Program-made: the position numbers and the translations under genes
Shown here: positions 9,607 to 60,300 of the stretch, piece by piece
Position numbering within the stretch: position 1 is the stretch's first letter
How the letters are laid out: every line of letters begins with the position of its first letter
Notes under the pieces: model-generated
The model's input: the letters and a program-made list of their open reading frames with translations, nothing else
Told to the model about the DNA's origin: nothing
The model's database searches: none
From: Bispira polyomma
Taxonomy: Eukaryota
Length of the DNA stretch: 64,000 nucleotides
NCBI GenBank assembly: GCA_965649765.1
Contig: OZ287755.1
Span: forward strand, 6,386,001 to 6,450,000
Direction of reading: 5' to 3'

Positions 9607-10149
9607 TTATCCATCTATCTAAGTTATCCTTATAAATAAATTCTTCATATATGCACTTGAATATGTGTATATGTGTTATCCCTGATATACTAATTATCCC
9701 CATTATATTCTCAAAAGAAGTCTCGCATTGCAGAAGAACTGTGAGGTACACCTATTAATGAAAATCAACTCTTTGATTGATCACCTGATACCTGATGCTA
9801 ACTATGAAAGTAACAAAGACTGGGACTGTCAAGTTTTACAAATGGTCTATTATTGTTAACGGAAAATATGTATACACATTATTGATTCAGATATTATACT
9901 TATATATTATATTATACTTATTGATTCAGATATTATACTTATATATTCCACATATATTCTTGTAAAATAAAGAGTTGAAGAGAAATTTGATTCGAACAGC
10001 AACTGAATATTTAGTAGCAAACAAAAGCAGTGGTGTCATCAATTTGGAACTGTAAAATTAGCTATTTGATACTGTTTGCAACAATGTCTGTCCACTTTGC
10101 AATGTGTAGCCGTCATGACCATAAAGGGATCCGATGTTTCAGTTCACCC

Positions 10150-10931
10150 TAATACTATATACTATTTTATATATCAACCTTAACCACTGGGGACCGAGTT
10201 GGCCAAGATTTACTCTGTCTATTCACCCACACATTATCACTTTCTTTGTTAGGTGGGACAAGACAATATCTTTTTACTTTAAGTGTTATTTTGTTTATTT
10301 TTGCGATTTTTAAGTAAGATATAATAGATTTATAAAAATACAGAACAAAACAGATAAGGAAAAGCACCATCAAGGGGAAGTCCACACAGCGAAAGGCAGT
10401 AGAAGGAGAAGTAAACGACAGTTTGGTCACAGGCTTTAAGGTTCAATTTGCATCTCCCCTGCCCTGCTTACACAGCACGTTATCCAGATCCCCGTAGATA
10501 CCAGAATCAATTATATCACTCCAGCTCACGTAGCAGCCTCTCACATTCCAGGCGGTCACCAGCCCATAAAAGCTACACGTATACCAAGTTCGGATAGTCA
10601 TGTCTGTAATGACAGTGATTTTGGACAGACTGGTTAAATCTAATGACATAATGAATAGCTGCCTAGATAGGATGGAAGCATGTGAGGTCCAGAGTTCTAC
10701 TCTGACAGTTTTTTTGGAATGTGATGTATACCAAAACAACCCGATAGTTAAATATGCTACGACAAGTAACACTCGTCAATCTGACAACGCAAATAACGCA
10801 AACACAACCTATTGCTCTTGCTGAGTACACAAGTGATCTAATGTGCCTTCCCGATGTTCAAGCCCTAGTCAACCAGGCTAACAAAATTTCACATGCCAAA
10901 ATGAGTTATGCCACCATTCATGTGATCAATT
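10150..10931 (+). mobile_element. 5' part (gag relic) of an old decayed DIRS-order element E1, interrupted by element A
   Basis: ILDRLVKSNDIMNSCLDRMEA and LPDVQALVNQ resemble gag of element D ([27 protein letters not shown]). The left boundary is approximate. Confidence 0.5.
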
Positions 10932-11445
10932 GCTAGGTAGCACGAAGGTGCTAGTGGGTTCAGTGCTTCAGGTAACATAATACTAGCATGTAACCCTCAC
11001 CAATTGACCCCAAGATTCATTGGTGTCACCTGCCCTCATTAAACCCCAGCCTGGCGCCAAAATACACATTTGCCTCACTTTAAAAACTAAATCTGAAGTG
11101 GCAAGACGCCATTTTAAGCAAATACACAAAAATAAATGTTGAACTTTTTCGTGGATCTTAGTCATTTTAGTCTTTATTTTAGTATTTTAATCAAATAGAT
11201 GTCTACAGAAGGACTCGACTGTGCTTATGGATCCAGTGGTTGCAGCGCTCCTGTGATATAATAACTCTGTTTTGAGTCTTGTGATTATTGGCTTCAACTT
11301 GTTGGGGCAATATTAGAGGGACGTTATCAGGCTTTGTATACAGTTTTCAGACCATCCTTCGGTATTTTATTTCAAATTCTGAAAAAATAAACCTCTAACT
11401 CAATATTCACAGGTATCAAAACAGCCGTATCATATATTTATACAG

Positions 11446-12441
11446 ATGGCACCGAGAAAAACATATTATTGTGAGGCATGTGGTGGACACCATCAAAAGC
11501 CTATAAACGAGAAATGTAAAGTGGTATTAAGAGAAATGGACAGTGTTTCTGTAGTGAACAGTGATACAAACTCAGGGAATATCTCGTCAAATGAGGTAAA
11601 CCTGTTGATTCTAAAACAACTAAATGACTTGAGCTCACGCATGGACAAATATGAACAGAATAGTGTTACGGAGCCCCGTCGGACACACACAAGTGTGATT
11701 CCTGTCAGCGTACAGGCGTCACAGCCAGCGACAGCAGTGGCAGCATCCAGTGCACCCCAGATAAGTGAGACTGTGGTGCCGTCCTTGCAGACCCTGAGGC
11801 AAGCTACAGACCTACAGGTGGCCGTGGATAGCAGACTGCGAGAGCTACAACAAGTTAATGAACAAGGTACGTTCTGGTCACAAAGAGGCGGTCAGGAAAC
11901 AATATGGGTGAAGCGTCAGGTACCCTGGCCCCAAAACTTTATCCTAGGTGGTAGCAATAAGTCCAGAATGTCCTACGATGCGTTGTCAATGGCCCAGTGG
12001 GTGGCTGGGTTTAGTTCCATAATTAGAGAAGAAACAAACATTGAAACAAAAAACCATATGCTTGAGTATATGTCTGACCTTATGGAAGACTCTCACGATT
12101 TCACTTGGGTAGCGGCCAAAGGTAGCCATGCGGTGTTAACATGTAAGATGGAAGAGGGGAAATTATCTTGGCAAGACACCTCAAAAATTGATAGGGTGAG
12201 AAGGGCTCATGCCCAAAAGGTTTTGGGGGGTCAAACTTCGGGCTCTGGGGTAACCAAGAGAAATAGTGAGAAATCCATCCCGTGTAAATTCTTTCAGAAG
12301 GGTTCGTGTCCCCAGAAAGGGGACCACGAGACCAAGGGACAATTGTATGCGCATGTATGTGCAAACTGTCATGCCACAGGCCGTTCTTTCCCACACTCGG
12401 CTAAAGACTGCCGTAAAAACAGCAGTGCAAAAAACGAGTAG
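11446..12441 (+). CDS. gag: Gag-like ORF1 of element A
   Basis: 331 aa. N-terminal CEACGGHH..C and C-terminal CKFFQKGSC..H..HVCANC..H..C Cys/His fingers. Homologous ORFs in C and D. Confidence 0.88.
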   Translation: MAPRKTYYCEACGGHHQKPINEKCKVVLREMDSVSVVNSDTNSGNISSNEVNLLILKQLNDLSSRMDKYEQNSVTEPRRTHTSVIPVSVQASQPATAVAASSAPQISETVVPSLQTLRQATDLQVAVDSRLRELQQVNEQGTFWSQRGGQETIWVKRQVPWPQNFILGGSNKSRMSYDALSMAQWVAGFSSIIREETNIETKNHMLEYMSDLMEDSHDFTWVAAKGSHAVLTCKMEEGKLSWQDTSKIDRVRRAHAQKVLGGQTSGSGVTKRNSEKSIPCKFFQKGSCPQKGDHETKGQLYAHVCANCHATGRSFPHSAKDCRKNSSAKNE

Positions 12442-12463
12442 GGCACTGCAGTATTGCAGTGCC
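12430..12463 (+). promoter_or_regulatory. Predicted -1 programmed ribosomal frameshift signal
   Basis: A_AAA_AAC in gag frame, 5-nt spacer after the heptamer region (GAG TAG), then a perfect 9-bp stem GGCACTGCA-GTAT-TGCAGTGCC. Pol is in the -1 frame and open from the slip site. Confidence 0.8.
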
Positions 12464-15038
12464 AAATAGTAAATGTTCTAAAATCACTGTGAAAAGTGTA
12501 AAAACGAGCAATGAAAATGGACCAAATCACAGAAGTAAAAGTGTACATAATAAGGCTTATACTAGAACCAGAGTGATGCAAAATAGTGTATGTGTACATA
12601 ATGTCAGTGACAATTGGAAAGCAGACTGGGCAAGGTTTCAAGGCAAAACATATGCCCAAATACTTTCAAATGGTTTCAGCAAAATCACAGGTACTTTGGA
12701 AGGGAAAAATAAGCAAAGGGTGTGCAATACTTCCAATTGTCACTTAACATGTTCAAATGTCGAAAAGCCACAGTCCAGTGGTTCTTGTTTAAAGGGTCAT
12801 AAAAGTTGTATTTACAATGTACCTAAGCCACAAGTATATGGGTCTAGGAAAGAAACCAATAATGTTTTTTCAGTGCAACACACCGACACACAAGTACAAG
12901 GTGTAAAAAAATCCCCCAACACAATGGTGAGTCCTATTGTGAAACAAAGTCGCACCTCCCTCCAAGAACAATGGCAAAGTGTGAAATCCAAAATTGGGAG
13001 CAACAATGTGGGGACTTTTCATAACAGATTTCTTCCATTGTCGTTGGTAAATGAGGGGGATGGGGACACACTTGGTGACACTGAACACAATGAAACCTTA
13101 AGTGCGGTTCACACTAATGCGACAGGTTCAAAAAGGAAAACCTTAAGTGTGACTCACACTAGGGCAAACAACCACTGTCGGCAGGGTAGTAACACAAACC
13201 CGGGCTTAAGTAGTGTAATTCAAAACTCAGACAAGTATGACTTACAACTGCATGCCAGACCTAAGACTAAAGAACTCCTGAAGTTAGCCTGTACCAATAA
13301 ATGTTTTCAAAATTGGGATACCCAAACACAAGACAAGTTTGGCTTTATTCCTTTGGGAGACCTCACAATTCCTGTATTTGATGCAAGAAATAAATCAACA
13401 GCTCCTTTGTTTGACATACATGAACAGATCAAAAATTCAAATCTTCCAAACTTTAGGGGGGAACAAATTCAAGTAACATCTCAGCTTAATGCTGACAGAT
13501 GGGACTTCTACCTCCAGGGTTACTGGGATAAGCAGTTGCCTTACCTCATCAGATATGGGTTCCCATTTGACTTCGACAACAATAAACAATTATCACATAA
13601 AGAAGAAAATCATAAGTCAGCAACTGATTTCCCAGATGATATCAGGGCTTATCTAGATGAAGAAGTTAAATTTGGGGCCATGTTGGGTCCATACTCAGCA
13701 CCACCATGTAGAGACTTACACATATCACCGTTTATGACCAGAGAAAAGCCTGGGGCAGTCCACAGAAGGGTAATAATAGACCTCAGTTTCCCACAGGGTA
13801 GTTCGGTCAATTCAGGGGTAGCCAAAGATGAGTATTTGAGTACTCCTTTTGTGCTAACCCTACCTACAATAGATACCATTACTCAAAAAGTGCGTCAATT
13901 GGGACGGGGTTCGCTTCTATATAAGACAGATATTAGTAGGGTCTTTCGTCACGTCAAAATGGACCCTGCGGACTACAACCTTATGGGTCTCAAACATGAA
14001 CAGTACTTCGTTGATACTTGTCTCCCATTCGGATTTCGGCACGGAAGTGCCATATTCCAGCGCCTAAGTGACGCTGTACGCTTTATCATGCAACGTCATG
14101 ATTGTGACGTCACTAACTACATAGACGACATTATAGGCTATGGCGTTCCCTCTAAAATACAGTACTCTTTTGATTTGTTACATCATTTACTCCATGACCT
14201 AGGTTTTGACATAAGTGAAAAGAAAATTGTGCGTCCAAGTACACAGGTAGTCTGCTTAGGGGTGCTTATAAACACACTAGATTTCACAGTATCAGTTCCT
14301 CAGGAAAAACTACAAGAAATCATGGGGTTATGTCAATCCTGGCAAGGCAAGCGTACATGTAAAAAGCGTGACCTACAGTCATTACTAGGCAAATTACTAT
14401 ACATCTCAAAGTGTGTCAAAGTTTCAAGGTTATTTCTCAACAGAATGTTAGAGGTACTAAGGTCAGCTTATAGTGCACATGTAATAAACCTAGAAGTAGA
14501 ATTCTGTCAGGATCTTAACTGGTTCTGTACATTTTTACCCACCTTTAATGGCAAAGCTTTCTTTGACCATCGCCCAATCACTGATTGCATAGAACTAGAT
14601 GCCTGTCTTGAGGGCCTAGGGGGCCGCTGTAATGGCCAGGTATACAAAAAGCAAATTCCCAGAGGCTACAATAGTTACCACATAACTCACCTTGAAATGC
14701 TCAATATACTTGTCGCAGTTAGGCTATGGAAAGACCAATGGAGAGGCAAACGGTTATTAGTACATTGTGATAATGAGGCTGTGGTTACAATACTTAACTC
14801 AGGTAGAACTCAAGACCGTACCTTGGCGGCCATAGCCAGAAATATCCATATGGAAACAGCAATGGCTGACATTAGCTTTAGCACAAGTCATATTTTAGGA
14901 AAAAATAACGTTGTGGCTGACCTATTATCTAGGTGGCATTTGTATTCAGACAGCCAGAGTAGGCTAGCTAAGCTCATAGTTGAACCGGAATGGGTAGAGG
15001 TAAAAGATAATACATTAAACATAGACTGGTCTATTTGA
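12459..15038 (+). CDS. pol: Reverse transcriptase / RNase H (Pol) of element A; no ATG at the ORF start, -1 frame to gag
   Basis: RRVIIDLSFP, KTDISRVFRH, LPFGFRHG and YIDD (RT); LDAC, HLEMLN, HCDNEAVV and NVVADLLSR (RNase H). Confidence 0.95.
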   Translation: MPNSKCSKITVKSVKTSNENGPNHRSKSVHNKAYTRTRVMQNSVCVHNVSDNWKADWARFQGKTYAQILSNGFSKITGTLEGKNKQRVCNTSNCHLTCSNVEKPQSSGSCLKGHKSCIYNVPKPQVYGSRKETNNVFSVQHTDTQVQGVKKSPNTMVSPIVKQSRTSLQEQWQSVKSKIGSNNVGTFHNRFLPLSLVNEGDGDTLGDTEHNETLSAVHTNATGSKRKTLSVTHTRANNHCRQGSNTNPGLSSVIQNSDKYDLQLHARPKTKELLKLACTNKCFQNWDTQTQDKFGFIPLGDLTIPVFDARNKSTAPLFDIHEQIKNSNLPNFRGEQIQVTSQLNADRWDFYLQGYWDKQLPYLIRYGFPFDFDNNKQLSHKEENHKSATDFPDDIRAYLDEEVKFGAMLGPYSAPPCRDLHISPFMTREKPGAVHRRVIIDLSFPQGSSVNSGVAKDEYLSTPFVLTLPTIDTITQKVRQLGRGSLLYKTDISRVFRHVKMDPADYNLMGLKHEQYFVDTCLPFGFRHGSAIFQRLSDAVRFIMQRHDCDVTNYIDDIIGYGVPSKIQYSFDLLHHLLHDLGFDISEKKIVRPSTQVVCLGVLINTLDFTVSVPQEKLQEIMGLCQSWQGKRTCKKRDLQSLLGKLLYISKCVKVSRLFLNRMLEVLRSAYSAHVINLEVEFCQDLNWFCTFLPTFNGKAFFDHRPITDCIELDACLEGLGGRCNGQVYKKQIPRGYNSYHITHLEMLNILVAVRLWKDQWRGKRLLVHCDNEAVVTILNSGRTQDRTLAAIARNIHMETAMADISFSTSHILGKNNVVADLLSRWHLYSDSQSRLAKLIVEPEWVEVKDNTLNIDWSI

Positions 15039-16021
15039 TTGTAGGTCTCCCTCCACAACTAGCATCTGTGGCAGCCAAGGCTGCCTCCAGGGCCCACCAA
15101 GCTTTTAGACCCTCCACACAAAAGGCTTACACACATATGTTTAGAGTTTTCCTTGCTTTCACCTGCTTCACAAAGGTTAGATTACAAAATATTACTCCCT
15201 TATTCATACTGGCATTCTTGGAAGTGCTTGTTACAAGTAATGTCTCAAACTCATCTATAGCCAACTATCTTTCAGCAATAAAAGCAAAAATGGTATTATT
15301 TGGGCTGGACACCTCTTGCTTCGCTGACCACCGTATTAAATATTACCAAAAAGCAATAGTGCTCAATAAACCATTTAGGGCAAAGCTAAAAAACATCATT
15401 GATATTCCACTGCTCACAGACATAATCCTCACATGTGACTCAATGTACATGGGCCAGATATTCAAGGCCCTATATTTGGTAGCATTTTATTCTTTTCTTA
15501 GAATTTCCAACCTTGTTCCACATAGTGTGGCTTCCTATTCCCCCCTTCAACAGCTTGCCAGGGGTGACATCTTGTTTGCACCTCCTGGCATGCACATTAT
15601 CATTAAATGGACTAAAACTCTTCAATCCAAAGACACAATCAGAACTTTTAAGTTACCTCACCTTGGCCTATCTCCCCTGTGTCCCGTAAGGGCTGTAAAA
15701 AACTTGCTTGCCATCACTCCTGGTACCAATAATTCACCATTGTTTCAGTTTAAGTTAAATCTAAAATGGATCCCACTTACAGACTCAAGAGTTAGGACCA
15801 ATCTGCACACCATTCTTACTCGTCTACATTGTCAAACCTCAAACATAACCTTTCACTCCTTCCGGCGTTCAGGTGCCACTTATGCATTCAATCATAATGT
15901 ACCCATTCAGGACATCCAGGCTCATGGCACCTGGACGTCGGACTGTGTGTGGAGGTATATTAATCAGGATCATAACACCACTGACCAGGTAGCGCTGGCC
16001 TTCAAATCAGCCCTTTCGTAG
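15035..16021 (+). CDS. Tyrosine recombinase of element A (TTG-called start; probably entered by splicing at 15045)
   Basis: Catalytic R (FLRISN), K (KWTKT), HxxR (HSFRRSGA), W (GTWTS) and Y (VWRY). Confidence 0.95.
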   Translation: MIVGLPPQLASVAAKAASRAHQAFRPSTQKAYTHMFRVFLAFTCFTKVRLQNITPLFILAFLEVLVTSNVSNSSIANYLSAIKAKMVLFGLDTSCFADHRIKYYQKAIVLNKPFRAKLKNIIDIPLLTDIILTCDSMYMGQIFKALYLVAFYSFLRISNLVPHSVASYSPLQQLARGDILFAPPGMHIIIKWTKTLQSKDTIRTFKLPHLGLSPLCPVRAVKNLLAITPGTNNSPLFQFKLNLKWIPLTDSRVRTNLHTILTRLHCQTSNITFHSFRRSGATYAFNHNVPIQDIQAHGTWTSDCVWRYINQDHNTTDQVALAFKSALS

Positions 16022-16608
16022 TTTTCTACTCACTAGTTGGGGTTTGGGGTTTCCTATAACAAACTTTCACATGTTGCATACTACAAATATTACATGTCTA
16101 TATTTAGGGCCACCTTATATTTATATATTATATTTATTTTACTATTTTACTTATATTGTATACTTAAATATACCTTCCATTTTACTTTAAGTTTACTTAA
16201 ATTAAAAAACTTTTAACTTTCTTACAGTTTACTTCAGTTAAGGTCACCATACGTGACCCCAAAAATTTAACTCAATCTGGGTTAACTTCAAGTTAAGGTC
16301 AACCTAAATGACCAAACCTTGTGGTTACATCAATTTAAGGGCAACTTAATTAACCACAATCTCAACTTAAATTAACTTTATCTTGGTTAAAGGTCACCAT
16401 AAAGTGACACCAAACCTAATTTCAAAATTCATAAAAAATTTATGTTAAGGTCACCTTAAGTGGCCCACACTTAAACTCTTTTAAGGTGGCCCTACCCAGT
16501 ATGTACATATATGTAGAATTATTAACATAGAATTAAAACATTAATATTTCCCAATTGGGTTTCTTTTATTTCTTGTCTTATCTCCAAACACTCACATAGA
16601 GGCACTGT

Positions 16609-18099: not shown

Positions 18100-21000
18100 T
18101 ATGCGGTACACCCAGAGGACATTTCAAAGTAATGGTAACCAACAGTGGGGAAAGTATGCCAGTCACAATAGTTATGGTAACCAAAACGAACAGCATGCTA
18201 GAAAAGAAGTTATCTGTGTCAAATACAATACAACACTTTCTGTTATTAGGCGGACCACATGGATAGCAGTGTCAATGCCAAACATGTTGCATGTTGTTAC
18301 TGTTTCAAAATTACAAAGAAACTCGCACAGGCAATATGAGTGTGAACATTTGAAAAAAGGGAGAAAAGAAAGACATGGCCAGTGTCTAAAAATGTTTGGC
18401 AAAAATAAAAAATAGACAATTTAGTGACAAAAAAAATCATTTCACTTTGTTAAATATAAATGATTTGAATCAGAAAGCGTGTCAGTTTAATGTAAGTTGT
18501 AATGCTAAACATTGTGATAAGCAATGTAATTCACATGTAAGTAATATATGTGTACATAATGGAACTGATATTAACATTGAAAAATGTGACTCACAATTGG
18601 GCCGTATCGCAAAAAATGGCTCTGACAACTCTCTAGGTCAGCAAAGCTATGACCAAACTCCACACTAAATAGTCTTCGCTTGAGAGTTTTATTGCCGTTT
18701 TCAAAGACATTGCTGATTACAGTACTAAGGTGTCAACCCAACAAATAGACATTTATATGGATAATTATGGGAACACTCTACTGGAACACTGCCATTTTCA
18801 AAGACATGGCTGATTACAGTACTGAGGTGTCAACCCAGCAAAAAGACATTTATATGGATAATTTTGGAAAACACTGTACTGAAACACTGTACTTGAACTG
18901 TGTAATTAGGACAAATGCAGACATTTTAGTGTTAAAACTTTTAATCTTACCACAGTTTATGACAACAGTTTTGAATTGGCAATACCGAATCACAGTAATA
19001 AAGTCGCACAACAAGTCACAAATAAAGTATCACAAAATAAGCCTAGTGTACAGCTGTTCGTCTGGAAATAACAAATACACTCTCACATGTACTAACGAGT
19101 TAACGGGTTCACTTACTGGTTAAGTGGGTATGCAATTTAACGAGCATCAGCCCAAGACTGTTAGCTGGGGGGAGGGGGGGAGTCTTCCTCCCAGGTACTG
19201 GCACATACCAGCAGGGGTACTCTTGCCTCTTCGCTCAAGTAGCAAAAAATAGACAATAATTACAATACTGAACTAAGTACATATCAGCATGTAAACCATG
19301 AGTTACTCATTCAAAGTTTTGTTGACAATGAATTCTTAAAGACTGAATAAAACCACAGTCTATTTTCAGACACTTGTCACTTGAGACTAGAACTCACGTA
19401 CCAGCTCATTAATTACAACAATGTGTCAGGAAAGCATATCAAATAGCTGTAGAAACTGGGGTATCGAATTATATAGCTACTAGATTGGTGGTTCCTTTAG
19501 ACATAACAATTTTGGAAAAAATTTGGAAAACCCTTTTAAAAAATCACTCAGATAATATTCTGGTTCAGTACTTGGAATTTGCATCAACGACATAGTCACT
19601 AAGCTAATGATGGTAATGATATGATTTGGTATAAGGCACACAGGAGTAGTGTTTGGTCCAAAAATTGGTTGTGCTCTGTGTCAACAGACATAGTATGTGA
19701 CGTCATGATGTCAATTGATGACATCATTAGACTGCAGTCTTTACGCGACGCACGTCAAGCATTGTCCACTTGAACTAAATTATTCAATTAGCTTGGTTTA
19801 CTAATTAATCCAGACAAACTGGATCCCCAGCTAAGCAATTGGGTGCATGGTCATACACTTTGATATCACCAAGGAAATCATTCCTGCATATAAGTTGGAG
19901 GAAATCTGGCAAATTTGCAAAGATTGGCTTACTAAAACTCATGCCACACATAAACAGCTTTAAAGTTCAATAGACAGGCTTATGTACGTGCACAAATGCA
20001 TGCAACCAGCTAAACTGTTCGTTGTACGTTGACACATCGCTCACTGGAGTAGGAGCGATTTGGGGACAAAATGTATATGCCTCCACTTATCTGTTGTATA
20101 AAGTGCAAGGTTTGACCATTGTCTATCTGGAGATCTCAACATTGTAATTGCTTTTAAAATTTGTGTTAAATTTTTCCAGCATATCAAAAGCAAATGTTGT
20201 GCGATAACCTTGTTGTTGTGCATTCACTCAATTAAGGCAATATGCAGGATGTTTATCGGATGGCATGTGCTAGAATGTTATGGGCGATTACTGCCAAATT
20301 TGTTATCTCAGTTCAATATGACCACATATATAGTGCAGAAAATAAGCAAGCCGACAGCTTATCGCATTGGTTCTCATCCAAAGCAGATGTTCAAATTCTG
20401 GCTAAACTAGTCCAATATGATTAGTGGTCTATCAACGATGAACTATCAAACCCGATTTTACCATTTAGTTTTTATTTTATAGGGAATGTGTTATTGAATA
20501 AAGCTGCTCACACAATAAACACAGCACTTGGACCCAATATCTGCAAATTTATTTTTATATTGCTTTTTGCATACACTTTAGGGTGTCAATACACGATATT
20601 AACTCTGTCTCAATGTTTTTTGGAATTCCTGGTTACACATGGCAACGCTATAGCTTCACTCTGAAATTACATTTCAGTTTTAAAACATTTCATCAGATTT
20701 ATGACTTACATTGGACTCACCTGTCACACAGAAAGATTGCTCTGCTTGTGAAATCTGTCCCAATAATGTCCCTTACAAACCAAGATTGACAAAAATTTGC
20801 TACAAATTTCCAAAGCATGTGATAACATACTGCATGCAACTCTATCCATGCATTTGATATAACCAGGCATTGTACAGTTGAGAATATCATATTTGCACAT
20901 CCTGGGGCACATATTTCCTCAATTTACTGTACTAAATATTAGATGTGTTTGACTCCTTTGGCTCACCAGAGGGAAGCTGTTTCTAGCAAACCCCACAAAC

Positions 21001-26573: not shown

Positions 26574-26607
26574 GTACAAACTTTATCTTTAACTCACTTA
26601 GTTTTCC

Positions 26608-29600
26608 GGGAAATACTAGCCAAGGCTAAAACTGATGAAACTTTTCAAAAATGGAATAGTCAAAATCGGGCCAAATTTGGTTATATTCCTCTGGGGCCAT
26701 TAAAGAACCCCATAACTGATCAGGAAAACGAGTATAATTTTTCAACTCTGCAGCTCCACAAAGAATAAAAGACAGCAATAAATTCAATATTATGAACAAG
26801 CAGTTCACTGTCGAATCGGAACTGAACCATGTGCGCTGGAAAGAACTCCTAAAGGGTTATTGGGACACCCAATTACCGTTTTTAATCCAGTATGGTTTTC
26901 CCCTTGATTTTGACAGGACTTGTAAATTAGCACATAAAGAACACAATCACCACTCGGCGTGTGAATTTACAGATGACGTCAAAGCTTACCTAACTGAAGA
27001 GAAAAATCATGGTGCCATATTAGGCCCTTTTAAAGAACCCCCTATGAAGGATTTACATATATCCCCGTTTATGACAAGGGAAAAACCTGGCGCCCCTCAC
27101 AGAAGGGTTATTATAGATTTAAGCTTTCCTCAGGGTCAATCAGTTAACGCAGCTACACGTCCAAATCAATACCTTGGTTCAGACTTTCTGTTAACATTAC
27201 CCACCATTGACGATGTCACCAATGAGATTATAAAACTGGGTAGAAATGCCCTTATCTATAAGCTAGATATAAGTAATGCATTTTGTCACGTTAAGCTAGA
27301 CCCAGCAGAATATGACCTACTAGGCCTCAAACTAAACGAATACTATGTAGATACGTGCCTGCCATTTGGCTACAGGCACGGAAGTGCTATTTTCCAGCGC
27401 CTCAGTGATGCAATGCATTTCATAATGTGCGTCAGAGGCTATGACGTCGTCAACTATATCGACGACGACATTGGGTACAGCAACGCACCTGACGTCCATG
27501 ACGCCTATAAAACTTTACAAGAACTGGTCAAAGATCTAGATTTTGCGATTAGTGCAAAAAAGCTTGTGCCTCTGACCAGCAGGGTAACTTGTCTTGGCGT
27601 CCTTATTGACGCGAACAACTTTTCAGTGGAAGTTCCACCTGAAAAATTAAGTCAAATTATTCAAATATGTGACATCTGGGTAGATAAACAGCAATGCTCC
27701 AAAAGAGAATTACAATCACTGCTGGGCTCACTTTTCTACATATACAAGTGCGTAAGGGTTGCCAGAGTTTTTCTAAATAGAATGCTCGACGTCTTGCGAA
27801 AGGCTCATGACACAAAACAAATTAGGCTTGAATTGCCCTTTTTCCAAGATCTAAATTAGTTCACTAAATTTGTAGGCAAATTCAATGGCAAAGCATTCTT
27901 TGACCATAGCCCGGTCAATGACCATATTGAACTAGACGCGTGTTTAATGGGTCTGGGTGGCAGATGTAATAACATAGTGTACACAAAGGAACTTCCTCTC
28001 AATTACCTAGAAATGACCATAGTGCATCTAGAAATGCTGAATATATTGGTAGCCTTGAGATTATGGCAAGGTATATGGCAAGGCAAAAAACTGGTTATTC
28101 ATTGTGATAACGAAGCGGTAGTAACAATTCTGAACTCAGGGAAAACCATAGATCTAACCCTGGCAGCAATTGCACGCAACATCTTTATGGAAGTAGCCAA
28201 AGCTGACATTTATATCAGGCCAGTCCACATCTTAGGTAAACTTAATGTAACAGCAGATCCGTTATCTATGTGGCACAAGGTTATTCACCCAGAAAATAAA
28301 TTACAGCAATTAGTAACAGAACCATGCTGGGTGACTGTCCCAGATCAAATGTTGGCAATTGACTGGAGTATATAATTTTTTTCAGATTTATCCCCCTTGG
28401 TGCGGTGGCTAGCAGGGCAAGCGGCTCACACAGCTCATCAGGCTTTCAGGCCTGCCACTCAGCAGGCCTACCAAAATATGTTCAAGGTTTTCATTGCTTA
28501 CACAGTATTTGTAGGCGTCGATATGATGCAGATTTCAGTTTTATTTGTTCTTTCATTTCTGCAGGTTCTATTAGCCAGTAAAGTATCCCAGCCATCAATT
28601 GCCAACTATTTGGCTGCTATAAAAGGAAAACTTAGCCTATATGCCTTTGACACAAGTCCATTTGCAGATCCACGTATAAAATACTTTCAAAAAGCAATGA
28701 TACTACAAAGACCTTTCAAAGCTAAAATCAATAAAGTAATTGACATCTCGCTGTTAACTCAAATAGTACAAGCCTGTGCTTCAATGTACATGGGCCAGGT
28801 GTTTAAGGCAGCCTATCTACTAGCTTTTTTTTCCTTTTTAAGAATTTTCAACCTGGTTCCACACACAGTGGCTACCTATAATCCGCTAGAGCAGTTGGCC
28901 AGGGCTGATGTGTTATTTGCACCCCCTGGGCTTCAACTTATTATTAAGTGGTCCAAGACTCTCCAAAACAGAAATTCAATCAAAATTCTTAAAGTTCCAC
29001 GTATACACAACTCAGTCTAGTGCCCAGTGGTAGCCATAAGAAATTTCCTTGCTATTTGTCTCAAATAATTCACCTCTGTTTCAGTTTAAGGCATTAAATG
29101 GATGGGTGCCTCTCACGGATTCAAAACTAAGACATAACCTCAAGCAAATTTTGTCAAGACTTAGTCTAAATCACTCCCCAATTGCCTTTCATGACTTCAG
29201 ACGCTCAGGGGCCACCCTGGCTTTCAATAACCATGTCCCTCTCCAAGAAATACAAAGCCATGGCACTTGGACATCTGAGTGTGTCTGGAAATACATAACA
29301 ACAGATCATAACGCCTCAGACCAAGTAGCCCTGGTCTTTCAAAATTTGCTTTCTCTCCCTACTTCCTAAGTTGGGTTTGGTGTTGTTTTTACTTGAAAAT
29401 ATACATAAAATAATATACTCATGTTATCAAGGCTAAGCCCACCTGTATCACAAACTCAAAACTGAAATAAAATAAAAACTCTATTTAAGGTTACCCTAAA
29501 CTTAAAACACCATCTTCAAGTTAAGATAGCCTTAAACTCAAACTTAAATTAAGATGACCTTATACTCGAAAACTTAATCTCACGTTAGGGTAACCTTAAC

Positions 29601-30619: not shown

Positions 30620-32210
30620 TTAGATAAAAAAAAGTTCACACAATGTACCAAGGTAGGATGATAGTGTAAAAGAATATCATGATACAGCAAAGTTATGGCA
30701 TGGTATTTGGAATGAATGTGGTTGTCCACATAGTGGTCATGTTGCAAAAATATGTAGCCACACCAGGGCTAAGTACTATCAGGCTGTACGTGTGGATAAA
30801 TGAAACTGTGACAACATTATCACTGAAAAGATGGCTAAGAATTTGCTTAATAAAATACACATAACTTCTGGAGAGATGTAAGACAGGTCAAAAAAGCAAA
30901 AACTTCTATCCCAACTTGTGTTGATTATTCTACTGGTGAAACACAAATTAGCCTTTTTTTCTGTGAAAAAATTAAGCCTTTGTATAATTCAGTGTCTTAT
31001 AGTATTACAGATATGTGTGATATTTATAAAGATATTTATGTAAACATAAAGAAGAAGTGTTTATGCTCCCAGTATAATAATCATTGTATTAATGTAATTG
31101 ATATTCAACAAGGTTTGTCAAAACTAAAAAGTGGACAAAATGATGGTCTTACAATGTGTACTTCTAACCACCTGTTAAATGGATCTGTTAAACTAAGTAT
31201 TTTTACATAGCTCTTTTATTTAGTGCAATGATAAAACCTGGTTTGACCCCAAGTGACATGTTGCTGTTAACAGTTATACCCATTCCAAAAAGCAAACATA
31301 AATCTTTTAACTCCTCTGATAATTAGATGGCCATTGCTTTCAGCAGTATACTTGGTAAGTTACTAGATTCAATAATTCTTAAAAAAAATAAAACAGTATT
31401 CTTAACTTCTGACTAGCAGTTTTGCTTTAAAAGTAAACATTCAACCTTAAATTGTTCATTTGTAAAACAATAAATCATACAATATTACATAAGTAACCAA
31501 ACTAATGTGTATACTATGTTACTGGATTCAAGTAAAGCATTCGATAAGGTACATTATTGGAAACTATTTAAGTTGTTATTAAAAAAAGAATTGTGTCCTG
31601 TCACAGCCAGGTTCCTGGCTGTTATGTATACACATCAAACCCTTCGTGTTAATTGGCGTAATAGTTTATCTAGCACATGTACAATAAGTAATGGTGTAAA
31701 GCAAGGTGGTGTGCTCTCCCCACTATTATTCACTGTATATATAGATCAATTATTAATTCAGTTGAGAGATTCTAGTTGTGGATGTCATATTGGGATTGAA
31801 TACAGCGGCAGCTTTAGCTATGCTGATGACAACATTCTTTTAAGCCCCACATTAACTTTGTTACATATGATGCTTAAGGTATGTGATAGATTTAGTGCTG
31901 ACTACAATGTATCATTCAACCCTGATAAATATCAGTTATTACACTGTAAAAAGTCACAGGCTATAGATGGCTTAATGTTTAATAATATATTTATAAAAAC
32001 TAAAACAAGTGCTGACCATCTTGGTATTGTTCTTAGCACCTATGATACTAATGTAAATATAAAGAATGCTACAGACAAATTTTATGTCTGCATTAATAAT
32101 GTAATGTCTTTCTTTTCACATGTGAATTCCAGTTCGAAGTATAATTTATTTAAAACATGCTGCATGTCTCTTTATGGTGCAGTTCTGTGGGATTATACTA
32201 GTAAAAATGT
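30620..32210 (+). mobile_element. Decayed LINE (non-LTR) RT region, 5' part, interrupted by element C
   Basis: LLDSSKAFDKV, GVKQGGVLSPLLF, YADD and CMSLYGAVLWD in ORF 31507..32262. Confidence 0.88.
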
Positions 32211-35200
32211 GCAAGGTAGCGGGAAGGGGCTACCAAGGTCAATGCTTCAACAAGTATACTAGCATGTATCCCTTGACCAATTGACCTGAATTCTCATTGG
32301 TCTGCACTGCCCTCATTTCCCCCAGCTTACCGCCAAAAACCTCAGATGCTTCACTTGAAAAACTGAAACTGAAGTGGCTAGACGCCATCTTAAAAAATAT
32401 AACAAAAATATTATGTGCTGGACTTTTTTCATGGATTATAGTGATTTTAGTTCTTATTTTACAGTTTTACTCTACTGAATTGGGACGATTGTGCTTATGA
32501 ATCCAGTGTAGCAGTGCTCCTGTGTCTTATTACTCTGTTTTGAGTCTTGCGATCATTGGCTTCACTTGTTGGAGCAAAAGTAGAGGAAAGTTATCAGGCC
32601 ATTCATTCTAACTTATATTGAAACGTTGATTCAAAATTCTGACAAATTACCTCTCACCAATAGTCGCACGTATCCAAACAGCCGTATTCTATATCTGTAG
32701 TGTTATAGCTCCCAGAAAAACTTATGACTGTGAGGCGTGTGGTGGACATCACCAAAAGCCTATAAATGATAAATGTAAAGTCGTGATAAAGGAAACGGAC
32801 AGTATTTCCATGGTGAACAGTACAAACTCAGGTAGTGTCTCCACAAACGAGATCAACCTACAAATATTAAAACAGCTAAGTGATCTGAGCTCCAGGATGG
32901 ACAAATATGAACTTAAAAGCAATACGGAGCCAGCTCGTGAACAGACAACGGTGCAACATATCCCAGTGTCGGTACAAGCAACAACAGTTGCAGGCGCTGG
33001 GTCAACTCCATTGAACGACATAGTGGTTCCTTCACTTCAGACGCTCAGGCAGTCCAGTGATCTTCAGGCTGCAGTTGATGCCCGCCTGAGGTAATTACAA
33101 CAAGTTAACTAATCAGGTACGTTCACAATGTGGCGATTCAGATACTATTTGAGTTAAAAGACAGGTAGCCTGGCCCCAGAACTTTATCCTAGGGGGTAAC
33201 AATAAGTCTCGCTTGTCATATGATTCACTATCAATGGCCCAATGGGTTGCAGGTTTGAGTGCCATGATTAAAGAAGAAGCAAATTTAGAAACCAAAAACC
33301 AAATGCTCGAACACATGTCAAAGCTAATGGAGGATTCTCACGATTTCTCTTGGTCAGCAGCTAAGGGAAGTCACGGTGTATTAACATGTAAAATGGAAGA
33401 GGGAAAAATAACCTGGGCAGATACTGCAAAAATTTATCGTGTTAGAAGGGCACATGCCCAGAAAATTTTAGTAGGTCAAACTGGGCCCGTGGGCTCAACC
33501 AAGAAAAGTAGTGAGAAATCCGTCCCCTGTAAATTTCCAAAAAGGAGACCATGAAAACAAAGGGCAATTATATACACATGTGTGTTCCAATTGCTTCACC
33601 ACAGGTCGCTCTTTCCCACACTCGGCTAAAGACTGTAGGAAAAACAACAGTGCAACAAACGAGTAAAAAGTCGATTTTCAGGTCCTGACAGTAAATATAA
33701 TGTTAAAAGTTTGAAAAACACAGAAAGTGTTAATACAAATGTCATGTATAGGGCCAGTAGATTGGTAAAAAGTAACATGTGTGTAAATGGGGAGAGCGAA
33801 AATTGGAGAGCGGACTGGTTTAGAATAAAAGTCAAAAGCTATGCTCAAGCGGTCTTAAGGGGTGTCAGCTCAGTTAAAGGTAAAACATTTAAAGGGGAAA
33901 ACAAACCACCCAGTATCTCCAACTATCGCTCACCCCACATAAATGTCAAGAATCTGCAGAGCAGTGTAAAAAGACATAAAATGTATGGTCGTCAAGAATT
34001 CAGACCAAAAAGTGTGGAATCAAATGTACATAGGATTATTTCAGCAATTGACGTGTCACCAGTTCATAGAATTGGAGGCTTAACAAGCTCCCACCAGAGA
34101 GAACAAAGTGTCAAAAAAACACCCTCCTCCCCCCCCCCCCCCCCCCCTCCCATTGTAATACAAAGTCCTCGAGGTTGTTTACCAAAACCCATTGTTCAGA
34201 AAGTTGCACTTTCCAACTCACACAATTGGGAGGTGTTGGCACTAATTGGGGTAATAACACTAGTCGAGACCACAATAGATTTGCCCGCCACTAACACTCA
34301 CTGAGGGGGGATGGGGAAACACATAAAGAGGAACAAAGCAATCCCTCAAATGACACCCAAGTTAAACACACTAATAGCACAACCAAAATGACAAAGTCAA
34401 GGTATAACAAGTCTACCAAACCTATTCAGCAAGGGGATCAATGTGAAACAAATGACAAATATGACATGCAAAGCCTAAAAGCAAGAAACTTATGAAGTTA
34501 GACAAACAAAACAAGTGTTTCCAAAATTGGGGCAGACGCCTGATAAATTTGGCTTTATTCCTTTGAGAGACTTAACAGTCCCCGTGTTTGATCTCAAAAA
34601 TATTAGTTCTGAGCCAGTATTCAACATGCACAAAAAAATTAAAAACTCTAAAATCCCCAACTTCATGGGGGAACAAATTCAGGTAGAATCCCAGCTTAAA
34701 GCTGATAAATGGGATTTTTACTTACAGGGCTATTGGGACACCCAATTGAAATATCTCATAAGATATGGCTTCTGGACATCGACAAAAACAATCCCTTAGT
34801 CCACCAGGAAGAAAACCATAAATCAGCTAGGGATTTTCCTAATGACATTAACGCCTACTTAGAAGAAGAATCAAGATTCGGGGCCATGTTGGGTCCCTAC
34901 TCAGCTCCCCCTTGTGCTAACCTACATGTATCACCATTCAGGACCCGTGAAAAGCCAGGCGTACCCCATAGAAGGGTCATAATAGATTTGAGTTTCCCTC
35001 AAGGTTACTCAGATAACGCGGCCGTGGCCAGAGACAAATATTTAGATACACCATTTGTGTTAACACTCCCAACAGTGGACACTATTACTCAAAAAATACG
35101 TCAGCTTGGCCAGGGGTCCTTATTCTACAAAACAGACACAAGCAGGGCCTTCAGGCACGTAAAAATCGACCCTGCAGACTACAATCTGCTAGGTCTCAAA

Positions 35201-37007
35201 CATGAGCAATACTTTGTCGATACATGCCTACCCTTCGGGTATCGCCACGGTTGTGCGATATTCCACCGTCTCAGTGACGCAGTTTACTTCATAATGAAAC
35301 GTCACGACTGTGACATCATAAATTATATTGACGATATCATAGGTTTTGGCATTCCGTCCAAAATACAACGTTCTTTTGATCTCCTTCATGAGACTCTCCA
35401 TGAGCTAGGTTTCGAAATTAGCAAAAAGAAAATAGTGCGCCCAAGCACTCAGGTAGTCTGTCTAGGTGTCCTCATTGATACGGAAAATTTTACAGTTTCA
35501 GTTCCCCAAGAAAAACTCAGTGACATCTTAAAGATGTGTAAATCCTGGCAAGCAAAAACTGCAAAAAAACGCGAGTTACAATCACTTCTAGGTAAATTGC
35601 TCTGTATATCTAGATGTGTCAAAGTATCAAGGGTTTTTCTCAACAAAATGTTGGAAGTATTACGCGCAGCCCACACTGCACACACAATCAACCTAGGGGT
35701 TGAATTCCACCAAGACTTTAACTGGTTCTGTGAATTTCTCCCTTCGTTTAATGGTAAAGCATTCTTTGATCATAGACCAATCACGGATTGTATAGAACTA
35801 GATGCCTGTTTAGAAGGTCTAAGGAGCCGCTGTAACAATCAAGTGTATAAAAAACAACTCCCCAAGGGCTATGAAAACTACCACATTACTCACCTAGAGA
35901 TGCTAAACATACTAGTGGCAGTCAGGCTCTGGAAGAAGCAGTGGGGCAACAAGCGACTATTAATACACTGTGACAATGAAGCTGTTGTTACCATATTAAA
36001 GGTAGAACAAAAGATCATACACTGGGGGCCATGGCAAGAAACATTTATATGGAAACGGCAATGGCAGATATCAATTTTAGCACAATTCATATTTTAGGAA
36101 AACATAATGCAGCGGCTGACCTCCTCTCCAGATGGCATATGTACACTGATAGCCTTAACAGGCTAAGAGAATACATAGCAGAACCACAATGGATAAATTT
36201 GAATGATGATGCCATGAATATTAATTGGTCAATTTGAATTCTAGGTTTATCTCCTCAACAGTACTTTCGTACGTAATGTTGGTAACCATGATGTTTTTAT
36301 CTGGTAAGGGTCTGTGGCATGTACATAGGCACTTAAAGTTTTACATTGAGTTAAATGCAGCAGAAGCATGAACTGTTGAAATATTGTGACTTGAACTAGG
36401 AGTAGGGTGAGCTACTGCATCAGGGTTACTTCCTATCATTGTTATAGATGGGGTCTCTTTTTCTCACTTATAATACAAAACCATCATATATTTTATACTA
36501 AAATTTTACATGTCTATATTTAGGGCCACCTTATATTTATATTACATTTATTTGATCTCTTTTACGTAAACATTATATACTTAAATATAACTTTTACATG
36601 TACTTGTATTTAACTTAACTTGAAAAGTTTATAACTTTGGCAGAGTTGACTTGCACTAAGGCCACTACAAGTGACCCCAAAAGTTTACGCAATGTACTAA
36701 GCTAAACCTAAGCTCAACGCAAATGACCACAACCTTGACATAACTTAATTCAAGGTCAACTCAAATGACCAATCTTAAAAAGTTAAGTTCACCTTAGGTT
36801 AAGGTCACCATAAACTGACCTCTACTAAAAGTAACACTCACCTCAACTTTAGGTCACCTTAAGTGACTTGTCTTCAATTTAGGGTGGCCCTATTCTCAGT
36901 ATGTACATAGAAGTAGAAATGTAACACAGAATAAAATTTTAACATTTCCCAATTGGGATCTTTTTCTTGTCTTATTAAAAATTCACACTCATCACAGGAG
37001 GCACTGT
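32211..37007 (+). mobile_element. DIRS-order element C (A-like family), both ends intact, decayed ORFs, YR gene replaced by unrelated DNA
   Basis: gag relics 32705-33666 and pol relics to 36237. Removing the element restores the LINE frame DYTSKNV|NSFYTAWKKSIR. Confidence 0.92.
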
Positions 37008-57300: not shown

Positions 57301-60300
57301 GCCAAGTGGGTTATACCCCCATTTAGGTTTAGACACTCCGTACAATGTCTTTGAGTAGTCACAACAGTATCCCGGATAACTTGGTTTTGGTTTTTTGGTT
57401 TTTCGACTTATTAATAAGGTCCTGGATCAGCATGGATCATAACTATATTGCTTTCATCAGTTATCTTCAGCAGGTTTGTCTCTTTCATTTACGATTGAGG
57501 ATTATTTAAGATATTTCAAAGTGTTTGATAGGTAAATCAATCAAAATCTACAACATAATCGAGTTGGGAGTTTGGGATTGCAGTATTATATGAAAATTAA
57601 CCAATGTATATATTTATATATTTCTCTTTATATAAAAATTTTTGCCAAATTTTTCATAATCATATCACAAATCAACATGCTCTAAACTGATATAAAAGAT
57701 TTGCATATTTATCAATACCTTGAACTCTGGGGTTAGTTTATTTAGACTACATACTCAACCATATCAGGTGGTACAAAATAAAAACCATTTGTCACAGTCC
57801 CCGTTAGTAAAGTTGAGATAAAGGTCAAAGTTATCCAAGTAAGGTCAAGTTATGGTTATGTTGAAGTTTGAAAGTAAGAGGTAATAAAAGATTTCACTTT
57901 GAGGTTTCATTTTTACATGTTAGTATTTTATGTACATGAAGTTACAGATAAAATAAATGCTTAAAATTTTTTAAACATGACAAATTTTGAAGCCCCAAGC
58001 CAAACCTAAGTAGAGTGTGAGATGGCAGATGTTAAAGGGACCACTGAAGCTGCCTGAGATGTATTCTGTAGATATGTCCAAACTGCTGAGGACCTCCAAA
58101 GGCCATGGGCCATAATGTTCTGCAGAGAAACGTTCTTATTAAATACAAAAGAGGTCCCCGACCTTCTAAAGGCATGAAACCCATGTGAGCTATATTGAAT
58201 GCCGATATGTTGTAAAACTGTTTGTAAAGCTGAACTTACATGTGAGTCGACAATTGGGTGATATGGTGTAGTTTTTGAAGCAAACAGTGGTGCCTTGTCC
58301 GAAAGTTGTCCAGACAAAAGCAGTTTCTTGAGAGCTATAACTGGGCAGATGTGTGAATTATCTAGCACTGGGATCTGTATGATGTGAGTATCAGTTCTAT
58401 TTTGCAAATTCTTAGCCCATTTTAGAATCATGTGGGCACCCAGGTGGCCAAAAATGACATCCTGCCTAATAAAGTGCTTTGTTGGATCAAAAGCTGATTT
58501 TGAATGGGGAGCTATGTTCGAAAGCCTCAAGAAACCAAAGAAGGCCACTAAGAAAATTGATCTGAATAGTATTGGATCTTCAAGTTTGTCACAGGCCTTA
58601 GATATGAGAATCAACTGTTCTATGGTAAAGATTCCTTTAGGTTTTGGTCTGAATATTGAGTTGTGTGTCAGACTTCTAGTGAAAAGTGCTACTGAGTTGT
58701 ATACAAATGGAGTAAGATTCTAGTTTAACTTGGAAGCTACAAATTTTATTGCTGCTAAATAATTGTTCACTGCCCCAGGTGATAACCGGTTTTGCACCAG
58801 GTATTCCAGGAATGCAATCACTGCACGTACGTTTACAGTTGTAATGCCTGTAATTTCTAGGAAGGCTAAGAAAGTTCTAAATTGAGCATTATAGGCTGTC
58901 GTTGTCTTTGGTCTCAAAGCTAAGTCAATCCTAGCACTGGCTGAAGACATCAGGATTTGGCTGATGTATGTGGAACCTGAAATTATATTGACAAATCCAG
59001 GTTGAAGTATTCAATTGGTATTTGTTTCCACTCAAAATCACTGTCAATCTTGTTTATGAGATCTTGGTCAGAAGCTTTGTCTGAATATAGTCTAGACAGA
59101 GCATCTGCAATAACATTTTTCTTACCAGGTATATGTCTAATTTTTGAAGAAATATCATAAGTAGCTGTTAGTAACCAGATGTTTCTCAAACACAATGCTA
59201 AGAAACTATCTCTGGTTTTGTGTGATTCAACAACCAGAACCACAGCCATGTTGTCACAGTTGATCATAAGACTACCATGTCTCCACTCCTCTGCCCATAT
59301 GCATAGCGCAATCACTATGTTCAGCATCTCGAGATGTACAATTGTTAATTTTCCATCGAATAAGTCATGAAATGGTGTGGCATATACTTCTCGGTTCCAA
59401 ACGCCCCCAAATCCTGTGAAGCAAGCGTCCAGATGCAGCTCGTCTGCATATGGTATACTAATGTAATTAATAAAATTAACACCATTATATTTTTCTAAAC
59501 ATTTTATAAACCATTCCAGGTCATATTCCATTTCATTAGTAACTTTAAAGCGCTTGTTGGCGTGCCCAGCTATAAAAGCAGCGAGTAATCTATTAATGAA
59601 GATGCGTGCAGGTGTCACACATTTGTGAATGTATAAAAGCTTTCCTAGAAGTGATTGAAACTTATTTTTAGATATATATTGTTTGAGCAAAACTTCTACG
59701 CAAACGTTATATACTTCCTTAAGCTTTTCTGGTTGGATACTTATAATGCCCTTAATGATGTCAAAATCAATGCCAAGGCATGTAAGTTTAGTAGTAGGGG
59801 GAGTCAATTTGTCTTGGTTCATTGGAAGACCCAGCTTTTTAAGCAATGTGTGGAGTTTGTTGAAGCCCTCGTTGGCTGTTCCTTCTGGCGCAACGCAAAC
59901 GTAGTCATCAATGTATCCGAATACTTTAAAGCCCTATTTACACATGTGAGCAGTTATTGCGTCTGTGCAACGCTGAAACGCAGCGCTGCGATGAACCCAC
60001 CCGAACGCAATGGCAGGGTCCACATAATATTCGCCCTGCCAAGAGATTCCTAGCTTAATTGCGTCCACAGGGTCAACTCGTAGATTCCTAAACGTCCTGG
60101 CCACGTCAATTTTGAATAAAGTGGCGTTCTCAGTATCACGTATGAATTGTGTTATATCATCAATTGTGGGGAACTTTAATGCGAATGCCACGCCATCAAA
60201 TTGATCCCTATCAACATTATCATTCAGCGAATCGCCATACGGATGAGACAGGTTCAAAATCACTCGACGTTTATCAGTATCTTTGGGTCTTGTAAGAAGT

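Follow-up and report, generated by a model that had tools for sequence, protein, structure and literature searches.

Introduction

How a tyrosine recombinase (YR) is produced by a retrotransposon whose recombinase frame has no start codon is the question raised by a 64,000-nt stretch of the Bispira polyomma genome (GenBank assembly GCA_965649765.1, contig OZ287755.1, positions 6,386,001 to 6,450,000 of the forward strand; hereafter the window, to which unprefixed positions refer). The window holds five related copies of such an element, designated A, B, C, D and E2, which were located in a tblastn search for which the three proteins of copy A, the intact one, served as queries. YR expression is unsettled among tyrosine-recombinase retrotransposons, as the open reading frame (ORF) commonly lacks a start codon and may lie in any frame relative to pol. 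Here we describe a conserved pair of candidate splice sites, a 5' splice site (donor) within gag and a 3' splice site (acceptor) directly in front of the YR frame, which probably joins the N-terminus of Gag to YR in a retrovirus-style expression plan. The same splice had been put forward in a preliminary description of the window, and all eight splice sites listed there were found in place and in phase 1, with the acceptors 6-14 nt past the pol stop codon. Removal of the proposed intron from copy A leaves, by simple arithmetic and as previously calculated, an open frame of 140 + 1 + 324 = 465 codons.

The comparison was extended to 16 related loci (L001-L016), which are contigs from ENA assemblies, including one TARA scaffold, collected through matches to the YR exon and through scans of contig collections. 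The YR exon has hundreds of relatives, as judged by a protein library search. Two contigs came from one collection scan, and the two contigs of L009/L010, a family that is more distantly related, came from another. A gag-profile scan of metagenome contigs and a scan of viral_contigs returned no match, and a scan of genome_contigs returned matches solely from a distant family. Many of the external elements share one assembly, ERZ22147071, though the families are highly diverged.

A candidate 5' splice site is conserved in the gag linker

Twelve gag copies (A, C, D, L004, L005, L011, L012, L013, L014, the L015 copy at 10777-10848, L016 and a minus-strand copy in L016) carry the motif MAG/GYA at a glycine codon (the slash marks the cut), always in phase 1, in the linker that follows a conserved V-D-x-R-L helix. 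Besides the sites of copies A, C and D (Table 1), GT donors are present in L011 (CAAG/GTAAGT), L012 (CAAG/GTAAAT), L013 (ACAG/GTAATA), L014 (AAAG/GTAGAT) and the second copy of L015 (AAAG/GTACGG). The other 4 of the 12 donors have GC, namely those of L004 (GCAG/GCAAGT, 4865/6), L005 (AAAG/GCAAGT, ~5183), L016 (ACAG/GCAAGT, 6472/3) and the L016 minus-strand copy (CAAG/GCAAGT, ~2060). All four have the perfect flank AG/GCAAGT, whereas weaker flanks are tolerated by the GT donors. Strict flanks are known behaviour of genuine GC-AG introns, and the flanks of the putative GC donors behave as expected for such introns. In one dead gag copy (L015:6385-6447) precisely GTAAG is missing from the donor site, a loss of five bases that shifts the frame.

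The preliminary description had placed the donor at a homologous mid-gag glycine. A glycine-codon donor in the gag linker was found, but the distance to the flanking motifs varies by several residues between subfamilies, with copy D and L013 shifted relative to copy A. The putative donor glycine is hence conserved as an island within a linker whose length varies, and does not occupy a fixed column of the alignment.

Donor conservation follows the nucleotides

Conserved splice-like motifs within a coding region can have other origins, and one alternative is that no productive splicing occurs at all. Translation of YR would then take place on unspliced RNA, through readthrough, a frameshift, reinitiation or a start that is internal or at a non-AUG codon, and the motifs would serve another role, e.g. 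suppression of premature polyadenylation by the U1 small nuclear ribonucleoprotein, or reflect protein constraint. The gag peptide at the donor, Q-G-K-F, is compatible with a donor sequence through codon choice. Whether the donor might be a by-product of this conserved peptide was checked using codon usage in these genes and a codon alignment. The glycine at the donor is encoded by GGY in 11/11 independent copies (background 64%), and the lysine that follows it by AAG in 6/7 (background 34%). Depending on the copy, the residue before the glycine is Q, E, A, K, T or S, and position -2 of the donor is A in 11/11 independent copies over five different amino acids, for which P is ~6e-4 given the codon usage (A-ending codons make up 32-66% of the background for the residues found there).

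An unbiased scan was made of a codon alignment of six gag genes, over the 100 columns that have no gap and in which three or more amino acids occur. The third base is invariant in a single one of the 100 variable columns, the codon before the donor glycine, and the first base is invariant in three, two of which are the two codons after it. The positions of gag picked out as constrained are thereby -2, +3 and +6 of the donor. Since these are synonymous or variable-residue positions and match the splice consensus, protein constraint alone is disfavoured, as is the wider proposal that no productive splice takes place; on this alignment, the candidate donor is conserved at the nucleotide level and not at the amino-acid level.

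The same results bear on the reading that the sites are chance matches in AT-rich sequence. AG and GT are indeed frequent dinucleotides, and the acceptors score only moderately with a position weight matrix (PWM). However, 12/12 donors and 15/15 acceptors agree in location and in phase across families whose gag identity is only 26-50%, the sole invariant third codon position among 100 variable columns falls at the donor, and the combined codon-choice probabilities are far below 1e-4. The preliminary description had judged chance unlikely; with the external copies and the codon-level tests, the chance reading is effectively refuted.

A candidate 3' splice site coincides with the start of the recombinase

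Fifteen distinct copies carry YAG/G (YAG/A in copy B) in phase 1, exactly where conservation of the YR protein begins (G-L-P-P...). The phase conservation first noted in the window thus extends to a larger set of family members, in which all 12 donors and all 15 acceptors are phase 1. The short distance from the pol stop seen in the window is also found in L001/L002, L003, L004, L006, L011, L013 and L016 (3-26 nt); L014 is decayed, and its pol stop could not be placed clearly. In L007 and L008 (37% YR identity) pol is followed by spacers of 268 and 312 nt with stops in all three frames, beyond which a long, strong polypyrimidine tract and CAG/G directly precede the conserved YR sequence. Next to the junction on its 5' side, the YR-frame triplet is NYA in all 15 copies; as a codon it would specify V, S, L, I, T or A depending on the copy, so that the AG is kept as nucleotides and not for the residue.

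YR has no conserved initiator methionine. As the preliminary description had noted for copies A and B, the YR frames have no ATG at their start: in every window copy the interval from the preceding YR-frame stop to the acceptor is free of ATG, and the same holds for 13 of the 15 copies overall. The first in-frame ATG downstream of the acceptor is found anywhere from codon 9 to beyond codon 110, and in copy A not before codon 32. The acceptor itself is situated ~9 residues before the SAM-like core-binding domain. Both the 13 copies without an upstream ATG and the onset of YR conservation exactly at the AG speak against expression of YR without a splice.

A different use of the acceptor, in spliced-leader trans-splicing of a polycistronic transcript, would suit the gag-less truncated copies (B, L001-L003, L006-L008), which keep the acceptor alone, and some invertebrate phyla are generally known to resolve operons in this way. 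Such a leader would nevertheless have to supply one base together with an in-phase AUG, and the gag donor is independently conserved at the nucleotide level with a matching phase, and the gag-less copies are simply truncated contigs or copies. We therefore consider trans-splicing very improbable.

Relative reading frames of gag, pol and the recombinase

In A, D, L004, L011, L013, L014 and L016, donor and acceptor are both phase 1, and joining them would place the downstream ORF in frame with the gag AUG. Between pol and YR, by comparison, the relative frame varies: B, C, L011 and L013 have frame 0, A, D, L001 and L003 have -1, and L004 and L006 have +1. A single recoding route from pol, by either readthrough or frameshifting, was considered and rejected, as three relative frames together with the stop-filled spacers of 268-312 nt in L007 and L008 leave no mechanism common to these elements. 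This also counts against the proposal that YR is made without splicing. No obvious -1 slippery site was seen in the pol/YR overlap of copy A when positions 15011-15038 were read by eye.

Gag modules and the gag-pol junction

The N-terminus of Gag contains a zinc knuckle of the form C-x2-C-x3-H-x7-C, in which C9, C12, H16 and C24 (window positions 11470-11517) are invariant. It is distinct from the Cys/His region at the C-terminus of Gag and would form part of the predicted fusion. A structure model of Gag, computed with AlphaFold from a ten-sequence alignment, had a mean predicted local distance difference test score of 67, with values of 85-95 over roughly residues 160-250. The model has a helix at 48-74, a disordered stretch, a second helix at 121-140 and, over residues 143-262, a folded domain; when the model was compared by fold with the PDB, no meaningful match was obtained (E > 1). 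The donor, at codon 141, lies exactly at the end of the predicted helix 121-140 and before the folded domain. Since the donor is at a boundary between Gag modules and the acceptor just before the core-binding domain, the fusion is predicted to be module-to-module.

This arrangement is relevant to the alternative that splicing does occur but that the Gag part has no function of its own, being a borrowed leader and AUG whose 140 residues are a passenger or are removed. All of the sequence evidence above would fit that version equally well, and avian sarcoma-leukosis virus is an established case in which the borrowed gag AUG alone suffices to explain a donor of this kind. On the other hand, the donor here follows a complete N-terminal module (the knuckle and two helices) and falls on a predicted domain boundary, not shortly after the AUG, and the element encodes no protease that could trim the product. 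A functionless Gag part is accordingly unlikely in our view.

Synthesis of Pol appears to be provided for separately. In A, L004 and L011 the gag frame ends in A AAA AAC, which is followed by six bases including the stop codon and by a hairpin of 8-9 bp, with pol in the -1 frame. The hairpins have energies of -14 to -17 kcal/mol and z = -4.5 to -5.0 (-17 kcal/mol and z = -4.8 in copy A), and the signals of L004 (5434-5467) and L011 (6975-7008) are accompanied by one compensatory pair between families. The heptamer and predicted hairpin are a textbook -1 frameshift signal, and with a dedicated signal of this kind at the gag-pol junction pol would need no splice. In L013 (1477-1497) gag and pol share one frame, with one TGA between them and no slippery site; this family probably uses readthrough instead of frameshifting for gag-pol.

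Search for a fused product

No fused Gag(N)-YR ORF was found among the protein-library matches listed, the two exons having been searched separately; these matches are ORF-style calls on genomic contigs, and a missing fusion is therefore weak evidence. The YR exon matches listed are ORF-type calls of 242-379 amino acids on genomic or metagenomic contigs. Short YR contigs were considered as possible transcripts and rejected, as they are genomic and have pol upstream. Gag residues 1-140 gave no match in a word-indexed protein library and, in a representative library, 39 proteins among the matches listed, none of which is ~465 amino acids long. The many Gag matches of 137-186 amino acids were likewise rejected as spliced products, being gag ORFs whose frame shifts within a run of G immediately 3' of the donor. 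Many library gag ORFs (P0121-P0134; e.g. L005 ~5200) end 10-40 residues past the donor; the G run, which codes for S-Q-R-G-G, is a frameshift hotspot due either to mutation or to homopolymer assembly error.

Observations that weigh against the proposed splice

The absence of a fused ORF is one of several points that weigh against a conserved Gag-YR splice. In L004 and L006 an in-frame ATG is present in the YR frame 14-17 codons upstream of the acceptor, and internal initiation is conceivable in these two elements. The phase 1/phase 1 combination never co-varies, and the phase match is consequently a single 1-in-3 event inherited by all copies. The distant family L009/L010 (28% YR identity) has no phase-1 acceptor and only a CAG in phase 0; in each of its two copies (L009:500-980, L010:100-600) the start of YR, in the -1 frame, overlaps the pol end. 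Lastly, the PWM used to rank the sites is approximate and suitable for ranking only. By this matrix the acceptors rank 4-45 of ~250 AG sites (12 of 262 in copy A). The donor, scored in the same way, is 2nd of 234 GT sites in copy A, 1st of 205 in copy D, and 1st or 2nd of ~200 GT sites between the gag ATG and YR in 6/7 elements. Support for the acceptor comes from its position and phase and not from its strength. In retroviruses, the combination of a strong donor and a weak acceptor keeps most of the RNA unspliced, and the strong donor and weak acceptor predicted here match that pattern.

The upstream ATGs of L004 and L006 and the overlapping -1 arrangement in L009/L010 favour the production of YR without splicing, and so does the published description of fungal Ngaro elements, which says only that YR is in frame with the reverse transcriptase (RT) and RNase H ORF or frameshifted (PMC3783388). 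Set against the several relative frames, the stop-filled spacers and the constraint on synonymous positions, expression without a splice is nonetheless quite improbable for the elements compared here. The donor/acceptor architecture was present in every element of the clade, at YR identities down to 36-37%, and its absence from L009/L010 argues that the putative splice feature belongs to one clade and is not general to YR retrotransposons. The contigs of L009/L010 are labelled as a Sedimenticola metagenome-assembled genome and are probably eukaryotic contamination.

The elements are Ngaro-like members of the DIRS order

The pol product of copy A has Pfam matches to RVT_1 and to an RNase H-like domain (Table 1), and the YR frame has matches to the Phage_int_SAM core-binding and Phage_integrase catalytic domains. 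The invariant residues of the YR alignment (R152, H270, R273, W296 and Y304) fit the catalytic set of tyrosine recombinases. No Pfam match to rve (DDE integrase) or to a protease was obtained for gag or pol of copy A, nor any to a methyltransferase; pol stops 33 residues past the RNase H match, with YR directly after. By domains and gene order, which is how they are known here, the elements are Ngaro-like and of the DIRS order (gag - RT/RNase H - YR, no methyltransferase). Their earlier description as DIRS-order retrotransposons was thus right, but should not be taken to imply DIRS/PAT elements.

No terminal or split repeats were found around copy A. Split direct repeats are present in the intact relatives L004 (A at 3783-3974/9419-9610, B at 9051-9350/10503-10802) and L011 (A at 5334-5547/10948-11161, B at 10434-10576/12845-12987). 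These repeats are of an A1...B1-A2...B2 type in which A2 and B2 are set apart by an additional 0.9-1.7 kb. Ngaro repeats have a compact B1-A2-B2 arrangement, from which L004 and L011 depart.

Copies and neighbouring features in the window

The coordinates of the copies and of the features of copy A are collected in Table 1. The YR of copy B has one frameshift near 29057-29060. Copy C has lost ~780 nt of YR and has kept the acceptor and the 3' region (36143-36495, compared with 14944-16078 in copy A); its gag has in-frame stops and a frameshift just 3' of the donor. Copy D is 26% (gag), 37% (pol) and 36% (YR) identical to copy A, and its decay is seen in a pol split into several ORFs and a YR with one stop.

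Table 1. Retrotransposon copies in the window and features of the intact copy A. Slashes within sequences mark the proposed cut; splice sites, exons and intron are candidates.
Feature	Position	Strand	Sequence or content	Basis
Copy A, intact	10928-16581	+		tblastn
Copy A 5' leader, common to copy C	10928..11445	+	~74-77% identity	blastn, A vs C
Copy A gag ORF, 331 amino acids	11446..12441	+	ATG at 11446; N-terminal knuckle, two long helices, folded domain 143-262, C-terminal Cys/His region	
Copy A proposed exon 1, coding part	11446..11866	+	gag codons 1-140 and first base of the Gly codon; 421 nt	
Copy A candidate 5' splice site	11863..11872	+	CAAG/GTACGT, phase 1, cut 11866/7	homologous sites in 11 other copies
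Copy A proposed intron	11867-15044	+	3178 nt; contains the whole pol ORF	
Copy A gag-pol -1 frameshift signal	12429..12463	+	A AAA AAC (12429-12435), 6-nt spacer with gag stop, 9-bp stem-loop (12442-12463)	
Copy A pol ORF	12459..15038	+	RT residues 471-602, RNase H 736-826; stop TGA 15036-38	Pfam
Copy A candidate 3' splice site	15030..15046	+	TCTATTTGATTGTAG/GT, phase 1, cut 15044/5, 6 nt past the pol stop	
Copy A proposed exon 2	15045..16021	+	last two bases of the Gly codon, complete tyrosine recombinase, stop	
Copy A 3' region, common to copy C	16078..16581	+		blastn, A vs C
Copy E2, decayed fragment	19838..20664	+	RNase H remnant, stop, acceptor TTTTTATTTTATAG/GG at 20482/3, YR N-terminal remnant	
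Copy B, 5'-truncated, without gag	26607..29354	+	pol remnant ending in TAA; acceptor TTTTTTTCAG/AT at 28385/6	
Copy C, decayed	32206..36975	+	donor TCAG/GTACGT at 33116/7; acceptor TTCTAG/GT at 36244/5	
Copy D, divergent family	58006..62887	-	donor GAAG/GTAAGA at 62341/62340; acceptor TTTCAG/GT at 58977/58976	

A separate RVT_1 ORF (E = 3e-18) at 31507-32262 (+), just upstream of copy C, belongs to a different retroelement, and an ORF at 6443-7093 (-) with a Pfam match to Sulfotransfer_2 (E = 8e-16), probably an exon of the host, points to an animal genome. Short tandem duplications were found in the flanks of the elements, at 56928-57081 (two units of 77 nt), 18693-18889 (two of ~100 nt) and 9879-9947 (two of 30 nt).

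Proposed expression plan

Taken together, the 12 donors and 15 acceptors, the nucleotide-level constraint, the lack of a shared recoding route and the lack of a conserved methionine support the idea, voiced in the preliminary description, that YR is made as a Gag(N)-YR fusion from a spliced RNA. In this scheme the full-length, unspliced RNA would serve both as genome and as mRNA for Gag, with Gag-Pol arising through -1 ribosomal frameshifting at A AAA AAC and the stem-loop by the gag stop. In a fraction of the transcripts, splicing from the strong donor in the gag linker (11866/7 in copy A) to the weak acceptor (15044/5) would remove the rest of gag and all of pol (~3.2 kb). Translation of the spliced mRNA from the gag AUG would yield a protein of 465 residues, Gag(1-140)-Gly-YR, composed of the zinc knuckle and the two long helices, the junction glycine and the complete recombinase. 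In the most speculative step, the Gag module may bring the recombinase to assemblies of Gag, RNA and cDNA. As the element encodes no protease, YR could not be released from a precursor of the Gag-Pol type, and a Gag tag would provide a simple route of delivery. From the sequences compared we infer the splicing itself, the function of the fusion as a recombinase and the role of the Gag module. For the fuller proposal, that there is a clade of animal Ngaro-like elements with a two-RNA plan in which the integration enzyme is kept out of Gag-Pol and the zinc-knuckle/coiled-coil part of Gag acts as an address label for the recombinase, the evidence leans modestly in favour.

Relation to known systems and implications

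Ngaro elements (Goodwin & Poulter 2004, as summarised in PMC3266345 and PMC3783388) have the order gag - RT/RNase H - YR and split direct repeats, and of the YR ORF in fungal Ngaro elements it is said that it is in frame with RT-RNase H or frameshifted, and nothing further (PMC3783388). The elements studied here share with Ngaro the gene order, the absence of a protease, a DDE integrase and a methyltransferase, and a YR that is in frame or shifted relative to RT-RNase H. They differ in that the published accounts of Ngaro consulted give neither an expression route for YR nor any splicing, whereas a donor/acceptor pair and a gag-pol frameshift signal are proposed here. No description of splicing in YR retrotransposons was found in the searchable literature, which did not reach the primary Ngaro papers or the main review.

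Spliced expression of a downstream gene is familiar from other reverse-transcribing elements. The env mRNA of avian sarcoma-leukosis virus uses a donor inside gag and its product starts at the gag AUG, while Gag-Pol is made by -1 frameshifting and a weak 3' splice site preserves the genomes. The likeness lies in an in-frame fusion of gag codons to a downstream gene on a subgenomic RNA; in the virus, however, six gag codons become part of a signal peptide and the product is an envelope protein, whereas here 140 codons encoding a structured module would be joined to a recombinase. In Drosophila, gypsy and other errantiviruses reportedly express env from a spliced mRNA. They offer the example of an invertebrate retrotransposon whose third ORF is expressed from a spliced subgenomic RNA that removes gag-pol, but they are long terminal repeat (LTR) elements with a DDE integrase within Pol, and the spliced product is Env and not the integration enzyme. 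ORF IV of rice tungro bacilliform virus is also said to be expressed by splicing, and resembles the present case in its long intron over most of the genome and in the fusion of an upstream short ORF to an otherwise untranslatable one; this virus is a plant pararetrovirus, though, and the ORF it borrows provides a few leader codons and not a Gag domain.

A conserved Gag-YR splice would offer a concrete and easily tested model for YR expression. Annotation pipelines that assume intron-less elements will mis-call the YR protein, and a transposon "intron" of 3 kb could give rise to unusual spliced reads in transcriptomes of the host. If the model is true, subgenomic splicing with a borrowed gag AUG arose outside the LTR-retrovirus lineage, and the fusion would explain how an element without a protease delivers its integration enzyme together with Gag.

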